Below are positions 10,802 to 25,262 of a DNA stretch of 64,000 nt, piece by piece. Under the pieces are notes generated by a model. It made no database searches. It was not told the DNA's origin and saw only the letters and a program-made list of their open reading frames with translations. A program made the translations under genes and the position numbers. The stretch lies in NCBI RefSeq assembly GCF_006345805.1, contig NC_043001.1, positions 19,530,001 to 19,594,000 of the forward strand, written 5' to 3'. The stretch's first letter is position 1, and each line of letters begins with the position of its first letter. Source of the stretch: Octopus sinensis. Taxonomy: Eukaryota.

Positions 10802-11761
10802 TCATTGAGATTTGGGTGTTTTTTCCATTTGTCCAGGGATCACGTAAGGGCGTCCTTGTTTGATCGCATCAGAAGCTGAATTTGTACTCGGTTGACATCT
10901 CCTTCTCACTAATTTTTTCAATTCTTCTCTGAACAACCGACCGCTCAACATGTACAAAACAAAATGAAATGCATTGTCGAAATTTGAAAGTATCGCCATC
11001 ATGTTTTTGACTGTCAAATCTTTGGCTACTTCCGTTTCAAATAAAGGAAATACGACAGAAGGTGGAAGTGAACAAATCAGATACATTATATTTATGGCCA
11101 ACACCAAGAAAATATTGTTGTTATTTTTCAGGGTTGACCATGATTTTGGACGGCGGCACAGAGTAATAATTATAGCAACAGTAGATGTAATCAAAATAAG
11201 AGATGGTAAATAGCTGTAAAAAACACTGTTCACTACAATAAATAATATTCCGGCATCGTAAATACATGATCCATGTCTGAAGTGAAAATATCTACTATTA
11301 ATGATGTTGACAATTAAGAGAATAATAGCAATTGAAATAAGAGTAACAACTTGCGATTTCCAACCAAACTTTTTCATTCGGGCTGAGAACGGTCGTGATA
11401 TAGCAAACATTCTGTGGGCGGAAATTGCAACGGTAATCCAAGAGCTGAACTGACGTGTGAAGTAAATTAAAAATTGACCATATTTGCACATTATTTCTCT
11501 TAATAGTGATCCATCCAGAAACATTTTAGACAGCATTTGGTGCGAAAATAATCCCACAATAATCAAGTCGTTTAAGCAGAACACAATCAGAAAGATTCCG
11601 ATATTTATGCTTCTTAGTCTTCTTCTGCAAAGCACTACCAACGATACCGTGTTGCCAAAAATGCCAATAACAAGCATAACTATGGCACTGATAACCATCA
11701 CAGGGTGTTTTGATACCTTCTTATCTAGTGAAGAAACGTCAGAAGCATTGAAATTATCCAT
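10802..11761 (-). CDS. Intronless class A (rhodopsin-like) GPCR, 319 aa, paralog 1
   Basis: Seven hydrophobic segments; TM1 GN, TM2 LNDL, C3.25 (IMCKY), SSWITVAISAHRMFAISRP, ECL2 Cys (HGSCIY), TM5 YLP, TM6 ICSLP, TM7 NAFHFVLY, helix 8 FREELKK; N-terminal NAS sequon; ATG start and intact frame. Confidence 0.95.
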   Translation of the reverse strand: MDNFNASDVSSLDKKVSKHPVMVISAIVMLVIGIFGNTVSLVVLCRRRLRSINIGIFLIVFCLNDLIIVGLFSHQMLSKMFLDGSLLREIMCKYGQFLIYFTRQFSSWITVAISAHRMFAISRPFSARMKKFGWKSQVVTLISIAIILLIVNIINSRYFHFRHGSCIYDAGILFIVVNSVFYSYLPSLILITSTVAIIITLCRRPKSWSTLKNNNNIFLVLAINIMYLICSLPPSVVFPLFETEVAKDLTVKNMMAILSNFDNAFHFVLYMLSGRLFREELKKLVRRRCQPSTNSASDAIKQGRPYVIPGQMEKTPKSQ

Positions 11762-12261
11762 CTTTCACTGTTCGTGTCCGGGTCTGTCACTAAATATTAC
11801 TTTGTCGATATTTATATACCAAGAAACCGAAATTACTGAATTAAGAGCATCAGTCCATCTCGTGTGTGTGTGTGCATTTATATGTAAATATGTATACACA
11901 CAAACGCACACGCACGTATATACATGTATATAAAATTATATATATGTACAAAGATATGATATATATAAGTATACGTATGTCTATGTATGTGTGTATATAT
12001 ATATATATATATATATATATATATATATACCCACCCACACATTTACAGATATATATATATGACCATATAGTCACACATACATACATGAATATATATATAT
12101 AATATATATATATATATATATATATATAATATATATATATATATATATATATAATATATATATATATATATATATATATATATATATATATATATATATA
12201 AACATAATAAACGTGTGTGTGTTGTAAACAAATACGTATTTGAATGACTTACGTGTATACA

Positions 12262-12360
12262 GATAGATAGATAGATAGATAGATAGATAGATAGATAGAT
12301 AGATAGATAGATAGATAGATAGATAGATAGATAGATAGATAGATAGATAGATAGATAGAT
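12262..12360. repeat. (GATA)n microsatellite within a larger TA/CA-rich block (~11870-12400)
   Basis: Direct reading. Confidence 0.95.
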
Positions 12361-12669
12361 GCATACACGTATGTGTGTGGGTGGAGTGTTTAAATACACA
12401 AAACTTCAAAAGGTGAAATGTTAGATTACTTCAACCCTATGGTCTGTAAAATATTATCGGATTATCTATTCCTGTTTAATAATGATGTTGAAGAAACATC
12501 AAGACTGTTTCTCAGTAAGACATAAGTAGCATTAATGGTTTCCTTGGTGCCGCTAAATCCTTCCTTTCTTCGAACGAACATTCTATTATTTAGATCTTGA
12601 ATACGACTAATTATCAAATACATCTACGTTTGCATTTGTGCAATAGACATTATTCTACATTTAAATAAG

Positions 12670-13117
12670 AGTGGGTGTGTGGTAAGTAGCTTGCTTACCA
12701 ACCACATGGTTCCGGGTTCAGTCCCACTACATGGCACTTTGGGCAAGTGTCTTCTACTATAGCCTCAGGTCGACCAAAGCCTTGTGAGTGGATTTGGTAG
12801 GCGGAAACTGAAAGAAGCCTGTCGTATATATGTATATATATATATATAATATATATATATATATATATATATATATATTATATATATATATATATGTATT
12901 TGTGTTGCATATGTTTGTGTGTCTGTGTTTGTCCCCCCAACATCACTTGACAACCGATGCTGGTGTGTTTATGTCCCCGTAACTTAGCGGTTCGGCAAAA
13001 GAGACCGATAGATTAAGTACTAGGCTTACAAAGAATAAGTCCTGGGGTCGATGTGCTCGACTAAAGGCGGTGCTCCAGCATGGCCACAGTCAAAGGACTG
13101 AAACAAGTAAAAGAGTA
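12670..13117 (+). mobile_element. tRNA-derived SINE, family C (GGAGTGGCTGTGTGGTAAGTAGCTTG head, internal TA/TG microsatellite)
   Basis: Matches the copies at 21508, 42561, 53601 and 54784; ends GAAACAAGTAAAAGAGTA. Confidence 0.85.
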
Positions 13118-22600: not shown

Positions 22601-23467
22601 AAGCTCGGACAGAAGGGTCACACACGAGATGGAAAGTAGGGGAGATAACAAAGTAAAGATGACCCCCCCCAACACGAAGGTGCGTGTGTTTATAAGAGAG
22701 TATGTATGTGCGTATGTGTGTGTATATATAAAAACTTACTTGGAGAAAAGAAAAGAAACGAAACGACGCGAGGGCGCTCAGTCATACAATAATTTAATAA
22801 ATAAAATATATGCATACATACATACATATGTGTACGTACCTACATCTACATGTATATATACATGCATATATATATATATATATATATATATTATATATAT
22901 ATATATATATATATATATATATATATATGAGTACAGGACACCACAAATAGACGTAGAACTCAACGAGAAACGAAAACATAAAAACATGGAAACGGACTTA
23001 TTTTAACAACGAAAAAACAGAGCACAAGACAAACAACACAAGGAACATTCCCCTTCATCAGCTGTCACCGGTTCGACTCCATGCGTGTTTCGAAGGCAAG
23101 GACAGAACACGACCCGTCGAATCGATCCTTCCTGCAAAGGAATTAAATAAAAAAATCCTTTGCAGAGGGGTAAAAACAAAGAAAGAAAAAATGTGACAAG
23201 AACAGGACGTTATTTTGTATTTGTATTTTTATTTGTATTTTTATTTGTATTGCTTTTACGTTTTCTTTACATCTCATTTGTTAAACTCTTTCTTCGAATA
23301 TAACACTTTTTATGCATATAGTTTCCCTGGGTAATTTTCTCAATGCTTTATATATTTTAAACAATGCTAATTTTTTACACCTATACGTGTACATTGTTAC
23401 ACATATACTTAAAGATCTTCTCAACACTAATTTGGATAGTACATGGGAGTTTGTGCTTTGTTGAAGT

Positions 23468-23960
23468 CTAATAATAACTAAACACGTCCAGAATTATCTC
23501 CTGTATTTGAAGAAATGGAAACACTATTAGCCGTTGAACAGATGCTGTATTTTCTTTCTCGCAGATGAAGAAATAATTCATGTTCACTTCTAAACATGCG
23601 TGATATTCTTTCCAAACACACCTTCCGACTGGTATAACATGGCAGACAGACGAAACATACACTGCATCGAGAACTTTTAGAATTTGAACATAGTCCTAAA
23701 GAAACTCATATTCGTAAAACAAATAACGTCGTTTACTGACCTTTTGACATGTCCAAATCAACATAAATTTTTTTTTTATCAACAGAAGATAAATATTCCA
23801 TATTGAAATGCGTTTCTCCACCGGAGATACTTGTCTTTTAGGAGATCTTAATGGTGTATGTCTGAAAGAGTTCTGACGTATTCGGAACCAGTCTGCCAAT
23901 GTAGACCTTTCTGAGAACTTCTTGCTCATTGGCGCTCGCTTCAGAAAGTTATATTGCGGC
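23468..23960 (-). pseudogene. Possible decayed C-type lectin domain fragment
   Basis: VCHVIPVGRCVWKEYHACLEVNMNYFFICEK fits the CTLD C-terminal C-x(n)-W-x(n)-C-x(n)-FICE pattern. Upstream broken frames give SISGGETHFNMEYL...IYVDL. Stops and frameshifts are present. Confidence 0.3.
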
Positions 23961-24359
23961 GTATTTTAGTTTTTTTGCATGTTGCTGATTTTTTCTTTTG
24001 TTTTGTTTTCTTTTTTTCTTTGCTGGCTTGGATAAGATGATGAAATGACCATTTTATGGGCAATAGAACTGTAGTAAGACTTGCCGGGGGATTATTTCTT
24101 AAATAAAATTATTATAAAAATATACGATGGTGAAATATTTCATTTGACCCTTAGACGATTATTCAAACGCAAAATAATTTGAAAATAAATTTCAGAACAT
24201 TCTAAATTGTATTCGTATTATATTTTTATTTTAATTCCTTCCATAAAAGAATAATTTACTACACCTGATGATAATAAACAGATATTTCACATTATCCAAT
24301 GATTTGTTCAAAAACGAATGCATTAATAAAGGGTAATAACGAAATCATAGAATTCTCAA

Positions 24360-25262
24360 TTAACTGCTCATAATTGTAAAAGTGCTTGGGCGTCGTTTTC
24401 TTTTCAGCATTGATTTCATTTCGTCCCTAAATAGACGCCCTGCCAAAATGTACAAGAGGAAATTGAACACATTATTGACGCTACATAGTAAGATTAAAAA
24501 GGACTTCGCTGAGTTTGATATTTTTGATCCTTGAGATAAAGCTAATGCGACTGAAGAAGGAAGAGTGCAAATCAAAAATAATATGTTTATTGCCATGACC
24601 ATATAAACTGTGTGGTTATTTACTTGTGAAGTTGACTGTGATGCGTTTCCAGCGATAGAACGGCGACAGAGGGTGAATACGATTATAACGTTACATGAAA
24701 TCAAAATTGTAGCCGGAAAAAAACTGTACATGACGCTTGCGAAAAACACAGTCACCGTTTTGCTGGGAGTAACACAGCGTCCATTCTCGAAGTAAAAATA
24801 TCTGCTGTAAACAATGTTTACGCTTCCTAGAATAGCAATCATTATAACGATAATTATAATCTGAGGTTTATAACCAGTCAAAATTCTCGCCCTGGTTGAC
24901 AACGGTCGAAACACCGCAAACATCCTGTGGACTGTAATGATGACGGTAATCCAAGAGGAAATCTCCCTGAAAAAATGAATGAAAAAACGGCTAAAACTAC
25001 AGTTATTTTCAAAGATATACACTAAGCTTATATCCACTGGCATAACATGATTATTAAATAAGGATGTGTAGAGGACGAGTAAATCGTTTAAACACAGTGC
25101 AATCATGTATAGTCCTATATTCATAGTTCTCAGTCTTTTCCTGCAAAGTACTACCAGAGATAATATGTTACCTACTGTACCGATAACCACCATTATTATT
25201 GCAATGTAGGTGGAAGTTAAATTGTGCAAAGTCGGCATCGTTGTTGTTGTTGTCAGAATCAT
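24360..25262 (-). CDS. Intronless class A GPCR, 300 aa, paralog 3
   Basis: 7TM with GN, LNDL, C3.25 (NNCSF), SSWITVIITVHRMFAVFRP, ECL2 Cys (NGRCV), FFP, ICTLP, NVFNFLLY, FRDEM; NLT sequon; ATG start. Confidence 0.95.
   Translation of the reverse strand: MILTTTTTMPTLHNLTSTYIAIIMVVIGTVGNILSLVVLCRKRLRTMNIGLYMIALCLNDLLVLYTSLFNNHVMPVDISLVYIFENNCSFSRFFIHFFREISSWITVIITVHRMFAVFRPLSTRARILTGYKPQIIIIVIMIAILGSVNIVYSRYFYFENGRCVTPSKTVTVFFASVMYSFFPATILISCNVIIVFTLCRRSIAGNASQSTSQVNNHTVYMVMAINILFLICTLPSSVALALSQGSKISNSAKSFLILLCSVNNVFNFLLYILAGRLFRDEMKSMLKRKRRPSTFTIMSS

Follow-up and report, generated by a model that had tools for sequence, protein, structure and literature searches.

A stretch of 64,000 nucleotides (nt) of the Octopus sinensis genome (NC_043001.1, positions 19,530,001 to 19,594,000, hereafter the window) contains three intronless G protein-coupled receptor (GPCR) genes, G1, G2 and G3, which probably arose long ago by tandem duplication of a single orphan class A gene of the Srw/FMRFamide-receptor-like type and belong to a small coleoid-restricted subfamily. 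An earlier interpretation made from the letters of the window (the sequence-only reading) had proposed these genes as a lineage-specific family of chemoreceptors. Octopus chemosensation is now explained mainly by chemotactile receptors derived from nicotinic acetylcholine receptors (nAChRs). The trio provides three short intronless candidates that could be cloned straight from genomic DNA; one earlier survey of octopus GPCRs missed them. Should sensory epithelia turn out to express them, they would offer a tractable way into the study of GPCR-based sensing in cephalopods, and if their role is not sensory they would still be fast-evolving coleoid-specific orphan receptors with an unusual replacement of the DRY motif. 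At present the cluster ranks as an ordinary small group of orphan GPCRs whose genes are already in public annotation, and the chemoreceptor label is one hypothesis among several because expansion, turnover, significant positive selection and evidence of expression were all looked for and not found.

The three genes lie on the same strand and are separated by spacers of 7.9 kb and 3.8 kb (Table 1). The listed open reading frames (ORFs) of G2 and G3 are longer than the genes given here (19696-20625 and 24360-25262 respectively). The listed G2 ORF opens with TTG, the ORF finder having used the bacterial code, while the eukaryotic start conserved in the orthologs from O. bimaculoides and the other octopod is the ATG at 20562 (MDSSRLN). 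An upstream in-frame ATG at 25262 would give G3 a length of 300 amino acids; both orthologs and the NCBI product (P0265, 292 amino acids) begin at the second Met, at 25238, which is the conserved start. G1 and G3, two of the three genes, are present in the NCBI annotation of O. sinensis chromosome CM016863.1, where G1 occupies 19,540,802-19,541,761 as one uninterrupted interval with a product of exactly 319 amino acids. Over 14360-35238 the window matches this chromosome (19,544,360-19,565,238; GCA_006345805.1, an O. sinensis assembly according to bioRxiv 10.1101/2023.05.16.540928) at 100 % identity. The NCBI gene ranges of both equal the length of the coding sequence, which supports a single exon, and exact-protein look-ups for both matched the NCBI genome only. 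The same kind of look-up returned no NCBI annotation record for the 288-amino acid product of G2. A tblastn search across the window found no fourth copy or pseudogene.

Pairwise identity among the three proteins is 44-45 %, and similarity at the nucleotide level is restricted to the coding regions (repeat families D7, D9, D10 and D12). The paralogs share the motifs SSWITV.I..HRMFA..RP, [NH]F[VL]LY and GRLFR[ED]E and have short N-termini, with some 4-20 residues ahead of the first transmembrane helix (TM1). G1, with AHRM at positions 3.49-3.51 and HFVLY in TM7, is the most divergent and fastest-evolving paralog and G3 the most constrained.

Table 1. Genes, putative promoter elements and spacer repeats of the receptor cluster (positions within the window)
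Feature	Positions	Strand	Description	Basis
G1	10802..11761	-	single coding exon, class A GPCR, 319 amino acids	ORF
G2	19696..20562	-	single coding exon, class A GPCR, 288 amino acids from conserved ATG	ORF
G3	24360..25238	-	single coding exon, class A GPCR, 292 amino acids from conserved Met	ORF
TATAAATA box, G1 putative core promoter	11809..11816	-	48-55 nt 5′ of G1 ATG	
TATAAATA box, G2 putative core promoter	20666..20673	-	104-111 nt 5′ of G2 ATG	
TATAAATA box, G3 putative core promoter	25321..25328	-	83-90 nt 5′ of conserved G3 ATG	
DDE_1 (pogo/Tigger-type) transposase remnant, G1-G2 spacer	16454..16906	+	PF03184, 51.1 bits, profile positions 47-177 only	
Interspersed repeat copy, G1-G2 spacer	12669..13112	.	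inverted copy 21505-21889 in G2-G3 spacer; I1/I3 92 % complementary	

All three proteins exceed the Pfam cut-off of 22.2 bits for Srw (PF10324), scoring 45.0 (G1), 45.2 (G2) and 51.5 (G3), whereas for 7tm_1 (PF00001; cut-off 30.5 bits) G1 (42.4) and G3 (45.5) lie above the threshold and G2 (23.2) below it. The orthologs described below carry the same precomputed Pfam assignment. An AlphaFold model of G3, built from an 88-sequence alignment (predicted local distance difference test, pLDDT, 86.7; predicted template modelling score, pTM, 0.85), has seven transmembrane helices and a helix 8, with a 14-residue beta-hairpin as extracellular loop 2 (ECL2) and 7 residues in intracellular loop 3. Comparison of this model with the PDB gave 1198 GPCR matches at E ≤ 0.001, headed by the CCK1R, orexin, nociceptin, kisspeptin, C3a, ghrelin and neurotensin receptors (TM-score 0.70-0.79, ≤ 22 % identity); sequence-only matches to the PDB were weak and generic for class A (rhodopsin, 1.9e-9). 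These data bear out the description, in the sequence-only reading, of three intact same-strand single-exon seven-transmembrane (7TM) genes of class A, Srw/FMRFamide-receptor-like and in tandem array, with the NCBI ranges of G1 and G3 and the conserved TATA boxes described below in favour of single exons. The strong divergence between paralogs, the family motifs and the short N-termini and ECL2 that it had listed are likewise present in the translations, the alignments and the G3 model.

The class A reference residues N1.50, D2.50, R3.50, P5.50, P6.50 and Y7.53 are kept in the alignments, invariant or nearly so, while the canonical microswitches D/E-R-Y, CWxP and NPxxY are replaced by HRM, CTLP and NF[VL]LY (HFVLY in G1). 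Of 198 relatives with a recognisable motif, 173 have E or D at position 3.49, 11 have Q and 7 have H; six of the seven with H are members of the trio's own subfamily. In the wider Srw-like group NF is the usual pair at 7.49-7.50 (110 relatives). H/Q3.49 is specific to the subfamily and F7.50 widespread around it. R3.36 (R91 in G3) is invariant across the octopus trio. In each of the three octopus species G2 has lost Cys3.25 and the ECL2 Cys, which form the TM3-ECL2 disulfide; both residues are retained in G1 and G3. The G2 tail is also without Ser or Thr. Two receptor identities were considered and rejected on single positions in G3. The trio are not opsins, because position 7.43 (counted back from N7.49) is Ser and not the retinal-binding Lys, nor are they aminergic receptors, because position 3.32 (counted from C80 = C3.25 and R105 = R3.50) is Ile87 and not Asp.

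All three genes have orthologs in a second octopod, represented by genomic unitigs (runs SRR11869384-94), with amino acid identities of 64 % for G1 (P0007/L007), 77 % for G2 (P0003/L003) and 83 % for G3 (P0001/L001). These contigs end in microsatellites or short interspersed element (SINE) sequence and run collinear with the genome, flanks included, which identifies them as genomic and not transcripts. In O. bimaculoides the G2 ortholog (P0004, A0A0L8GGA3) is full length at 288 amino acids. Between O. sinensis and the second octopod the non-coding flanks have diverged by a Jukes-Cantor distance of 0.16-0.18 and differ by about 15 indel events per kb, whereas G2 has no indels in 867 nt of coding sequence and G3 none within its conserved coding region; G1 has two in-frame 3-nt indels along with one 1-nt indel in the C-terminal tail. 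Under simulated neutral substitution the probability of no new stop was 0.002 for G1 and 0.03-0.04 for G2 and G3, and at the indel rate of the flanks the probability of no frameshift was about 1e-5 per gene. The indel-free coding regions beside indel-rich flanks, together with the neutral simulation, place the reading frames under selection. G1-G3 are functional genes whose frames are guarded against frameshifts and stops, as the sequence-only reading had supposed on finding all three intact.

The strength of this selection differs between the genes. Ratios of nonsynonymous to synonymous substitution (dN/dS) against the orthologs were 0.33 by NG86 and 0.38 by YN00 for G3, 0.48 and 0.76 for G2, and 0.85 and 1.0 for G1, with an ortholog dS of about 0.24-0.27 for all three genes. 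These values are comparable to the omega of 0.31 of one octopus GPCR expansion (PMC6408891). The purifying selection proposed beforehand therefore holds for the frame, which is clearly protected, but constraint on the protein is weak and there is no significant positive selection. Paralog dS exceeds 1.3 and is saturated, and hence the duplications are old. With the receptor divided into outer (extracellular) and inner (intracellular) halves by the AlphaFold model, replacements between orthologs affect 47 % of the outer against 22 % of the inner half in G1 (Fisher p = 1e-5) and 30 % against 15 % in G2 (p = 0.006), and between paralogs the outer half differs at 72-75 % of positions and the inner at 37-47 % (p ≤ 4e-5).

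To define the extent of the subfamily we utilized a HMMER search with a subfamily profile covering 1.84 billion cluster representatives, which gave 7054 hits at E ≤ 1e-3 and only 15 at E ≤ 1e-30. The clade with H or Q at 3.49 comprised, among these representatives, only G1, G2, G3 and decapodiform copies. A neighbour-joining tree with 200 bootstraps supported each ortholog pair of G1, G2 and G3 at 100 %, octopus G1+G2+G3 at 63 % and the octopus trio together with two copies from assembly ERZ21867824 at 92 %. The latter are tandem same-strand genes at 695-1594 and 10001-10954 (L006, ctg117151l) that carry a QRT motif, share 62 % identity and lie 9.3 kb from one another. ERZ21867824 is probably decapodiform, having no repeats in common with Octopus and one copy that is 75 % identical to that of the cuttlefish Acanthosepion pharaonis. 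Since this assembly bears its own tandem pair, tandem duplication would have happened independently or very early. The cuttlefish itself has one copy, also QRT, as a contiguous ORF homologous to residues 24-299 (L016, 9953-10801; CAHIKZ030002957.1), for which the NCBI model is mis-built (236 amino acids from a 12-kb multi-exon gene, the C-terminal half being nonsense).

The next relatives are short E-R-x receptors of 275-300 amino acids, including O. bimaculoides XP_014770947 (P0012) and another ERZ21867824 gene. The nearest non-cephalopod proteins are uncharacterised Srw-like GPCRs of annelids, bivalves and chitons, at most 31 % identical, and the automatic names of the non-cephalopod matches are contradictory (orexin-2, TRH-like, ghrelin-like, GPR139, mu-opioid-like and psychosine-like). 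Neither the best non-cephalopod matches nor the tree, in which the trio falls in a cephalopod clade, revealed a one-to-one ortholog among the conserved bilaterian neuropeptide receptors, a relationship that the sequence-only reading had itself named as contrary to its proposal. On this evidence the subfamily is coleoid-restricted and tiny, with three genes per octopus, and not orthologous to conserved neuropeptide receptors. Its supposed lineage specificity holds in that close relatives outside the cephalopods are lacking, although the decapodiform copies make it coleoid-wide and not specific to octopus. The supposed expansion did not survive, with three genes per octopus in stable one-to-one orthology and only the decapodiform copies added.

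Each gene is preceded by a TATAAATA box. The window holds 12 TATAAATA sites, 7 of them on the minus strand, and three of these 7 sit 48-111 nt 5′ of the G1-G3 starts, an arrangement with a chance probability of about 1e-6 by our own estimate. For G3 the distance is 59-66 nt when counted from the first ATG (25262). All three boxes are kept in the second octopod (for G2 on contig L003 and for G3 on contig L001), and in G1 both the box and the CCGACAAAG that follows it are conserved. The sequence downstream of the G2 box, TATAAATACCAACAAA, resembles that of G1, the two sharing CC[GA]ACAAA after the box. A polypyrimidine-AG at 25284-25300 resembled a splice acceptor and raised the possibility of an intron in the 5′ untranslated region (UTR) of G3; with the conserved TATA box a mere 35 nt or so upstream of it, however, a proximal promoter is the simpler reading. 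Poly(A)-signal-like hexamers occur 124-429 nt 3′ of the stops. In the simplest reading G1-G3 appear to be three independent, intronless, TATA-driven transcription units, and each copy would have its own TATA box, short leader, uninterrupted coding exon and poly(A)-signal-like hexamer.

About 165 nt downstream of the G1 stop begins an inverted-repeat structure (9551-10637) whose 87-nt arms (9551-9637 and 10551-10637) are 100 % complementary and enclose direct repeats (9633-9801 and 10385-10553) that are 96 % identical. It looks like a young foldback or miniature inverted-repeat transposable element (MITE)-like element, possibly within the G1 3′ UTR.

The division of the receptors into a shared inner and a divergent outer half suggests how they might signal. 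The trio may act as ordinary ligand-gated G-protein switches. The three would probably couple to the same kind of transducer, since features of the intracellular half (N1.50, D2.50, R3.50, P5.50, P6.50, Y7.53 and GRLFRxE) are common to the paralogs, and each probably recognises a different ligand because the extracellular, pocket-forming half is where most positions differ between them. The outer halves of G1 and G2 also change about 2-3 times faster than the inner between species, which suggests quickly changing ligands for these two. The peptide-receptor-like fold, the beta-hairpin in ECL2 and the lack of Asp at 3.32 make a peptide or other non-amine compound the more likely ligand. The derived residues (H/Q3.49, T6.48, R3.36 in the trio and H7.49 in G1) may shift the basal activity. 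The cues may be external, as in chemosensation or pheromone detection, or they may be internal signals specific to cephalopods. Roughly, we regard an internal peptide or hormone role as plausible though short of even odds and a sensory role as a possibility more doubtful than not, with the remainder falling to other or atypical functions.

An internal role would make the trio receptors for endogenous cephalopod-specific peptides or hormones of neuropeptide, reproductive or immune function, a small set that subfunctionalised long ago, and we hold this tentatively. The small stable family, its one-to-one orthologs, the old duplication (paralog dS > 1.3), the conserved intracellular half and an origin before the octopod-decapodiform split are all in keeping with such a role. 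So is the fold, the closest structures to the G3 model all being peptide receptors. Vertebrate class A peptide receptors share with it the ECL2 beta-hairpin and helix 8, but orthology is lacking, identity does not exceed 22 %, the termini and loops of the trio are much shorter, and HRM, CTLP and NFxLY stand in place of their DRY, CWxP and NPxxY. The very short extracellular loops and N-termini and the lack of an ortholog outside coleoids argue against endogenous ligands, as do dN/dS values of 0.33-0.85, which are several-fold above those typical of conserved neuropeptide receptors.

The chemoreceptor reading, a dedicated GPCR subfamily in sensory cells of the sucker, skin or olfactory organ that would detect external chemicals in parallel to the chemotactile receptors, is possible but doubtful. 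Tandem lineage-specific class A GPCRs are published candidates for molluscan chemoreceptors, both in Aplysia (PMC2700072) and across 238 lophotrochozoan genomes (PMC11886862). The Aplysia AcCRa/b/c families (Cummins et al. 2009, PMC2700072) resemble the trio in being rhodopsin-like, mostly single-exon genes of about 320-360 amino acids with a short N-terminus, in the same orientation, 9-13 kb apart and with transposon remnants between them. They share a WIT...T.ER motif (PMC2700072), and around the Arg both systems have a TM3/intracellular loop 2 signature, WITAFVTFERCLCIA in Aplysia and SSWITVxITVHRMFA in the trio, although Aplysia keeps E at 3.49 where the trio has H. The Aplysia families differ, however, in having tens of members (AcCRb alone has 38 full-length genes), pseudogenes, and expression in rhinophore and tentacle, as against three genes and no pseudogenes here. 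No Aplysia proteins were among the closest matches of the trio, which gives no support for direct orthology.

The trio also falls within the Srw-like neighbourhood of the lophotrochozoan lineage-specific receptors (Nath et al. 2025, PMC11886862), which are likewise tandem, lack conserved bilaterian orthologs and have been proposed as chemoreceptors. Cephalopods have few such genes (3-146; PMC11886862), and the trio differs from them in its clean one-to-one octopod orthologs and its decapodiform sister group. The match to Srw (PF10324), a family named for nematode serpentine class W receptors, is a statistical family assignment and not chemosensory evidence: NNAFNFVLY in TM7, with F at 7.50, fits the NSxxNFxxY-like pattern, but the best match lies mostly within the N-terminal half of the profile and the nematode Srw genes are not orthologs. 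The dN/dS of 0.33-0.85, the ligand-side change in G1 and G2 and the lack of a bilaterian neuropeptide-receptor ortholog are consistent with chemoreception, whereas three genes in stable one-to-one orthology, with constant copy number and no pseudogenes, are unlike chemoreceptor families that evolve by birth and death. A dN/dS significantly above 1, which would also have favoured chemoreception, was not found. Of the proposed chemoreceptor expansion, then, the tandem single-exon architecture fits, while expansion and gene turnover are absent. Its separateness from the nAChR-derived octopus chemotactile receptors was rightly asserted, those being Cys-loop pentameric ion channels (PMC11886862), a class unrelated to 7TM receptors that overlaps with the trio only in its proposed role.

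Comparable cephalopod GPCRs weaken the link between architecture and chemosensation. Groups 1 and 2 of the cephalopod class A expansions (Ritschard et al. 2019, PMC6408891) are similar in being cephalopod-restricted, partly tandem and fast-evolving, with molluscan peptide-receptor-like relatives, and these cephalopod-specific expansions have their main expression outside the brain, namely in the testes, gills, eyes and accessory nidamental gland (PMC6408891). A chemosensory role therefore does not follow from architecture alone. Three short Srw-like receptors of O. bimaculoides, the orthologs A0A0L8GGA3 and A0A0L8GGH3 and a relative, A0A0L8HN02, do not appear in the tables of that study (S2, S3; 235 octopus GPCRs; PMC6408891), so that the trio's subfamily was not analysed there. 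We infer that their absence from the catalogue is due to 7tm_1 scores below the cut-off, as for G2. A more specific proposal, on which we would put little weight, is that the H/Q3.49 trio forms a GPCR channel for chemicals or pheromones in sensory cells of the sucker, lip or olfactory organ beside the chemotactile receptors, with H3.49, R3.36 and T6.48 tuning a high basal or pH-dependent activity.

It is improbable that these are atypical receptors, whether constitutive, ligand-independent or signalling without G proteins (scavenger or arrestin-biased), or that G1 is drifting towards loss of function. The replacement of an acidic 3.49, which is E or D in 87 % of relatives, by H/Q, the changes W6.48 to T and P7.50 to F, H7.49 in G1, a G1 dN/dS of about 0.85-1.0 in both halves and the G2 tail without Ser/Thr all point in that direction. 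However, T6.48 is present in aligned outgroups and F7.50 in the majority of the wider Srw-like group, and neither can count as a special defect. In addition, R3.50, D2.50, N1.50 and Y7.53 are kept, the frames of all three genes are protected, and the unusual residues of G1 are the same in both species. That the three are chance ORFs or pseudogenes without function, a view favoured by the AT-rich, repeat-rich setting and nothing beyond it, is effectively refuted by GPCR homology, conserved orthologs, frameshift-free coding regions, the neutral simulation and the conserved TATA boxes.

Several observations weigh against the interpretation we favour, of old tandem duplicates that work as ordinary receptors of a small coleoid subfamily. 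The activation switches are altered at H3.49, T6.48 and F7.50, and in G1 of both species at H7.49 as well, so that classical G-protein coupling is only assumed. In O. bimaculoides the G1 (P0009) and G3 (P0002) models are truncated at 165 and 205 amino acids, which may reflect assembly error or gene loss, while the A. pharaonis copy has stops in its first ~25 codons in that assembly, which could reflect either an assembly error or a pseudogene. G1, with a dN/dS near 0.85-1.0 in its outer and inner halves alike, may be under relaxed constraint. Replacements in G3 are not significantly concentrated in the outer half (18 % against 15 % in the inner), in none of the genes did dN/dS for either half significantly exceed 1 (the intervals, from DNA of two species, include 1), and faster change on the extracellular side is common across GPCRs generally. 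Transcripts of G1-G3 were not found among the protein look-ups and the matching contigs, all of which are genomic.

The spacers, which the sequence-only reading had described as full of decayed transposons, fit that description in part: they hold one DDE_1 remnant, repeat copies and many microsatellites, but ten other spacer ORFs gave no meaningful Pfam match. The 12669-13112 interspersed repeat has further copies both in other parts of the window and in O. bimaculoides. Some 30 further ORFs of the window were scanned against Pfam for other genes, and only DDE_1 and Helitron fragments were recognisable. The fragmented Helitron (32778-36159, minus strand) is spread over at least three frames, with matches to Helitron_like_N (144.7 bits) and PIF1 helicase (95 + 41 bits), and encloses a minisatellite of 8.3 copies of a 31-bp unit at 35055-35312.

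A SINE-like repeat of about 240 bp, containing CCCACAAGGGGCTAAACACAGAG, has at least 12 copies in the window at 85-95 % identity, including those at 1708-1938, 7953-8087, 8648-8937, 28627-30717, 31851-32090 and 44866-46406. Three copies stand in tandem at 28730-29280 with a period of 185 bp, and the same repeat terminates the genomic unitigs of the second octopod. The copy at 8648-8937 adjoins a full-length match to 5S rRNA at 8942-9061 on the minus strand (Rfam RF00001, 70.8 bits, model positions 1-120), which may represent a 5S gene or pseudogene, or a retroposon headed by 5S sequence. A satellite array of 2.4 kb at 38936-41352, made up of 43 copies of a 56-bp unit with 93 % matches, coincides with strong GC and AT skew.

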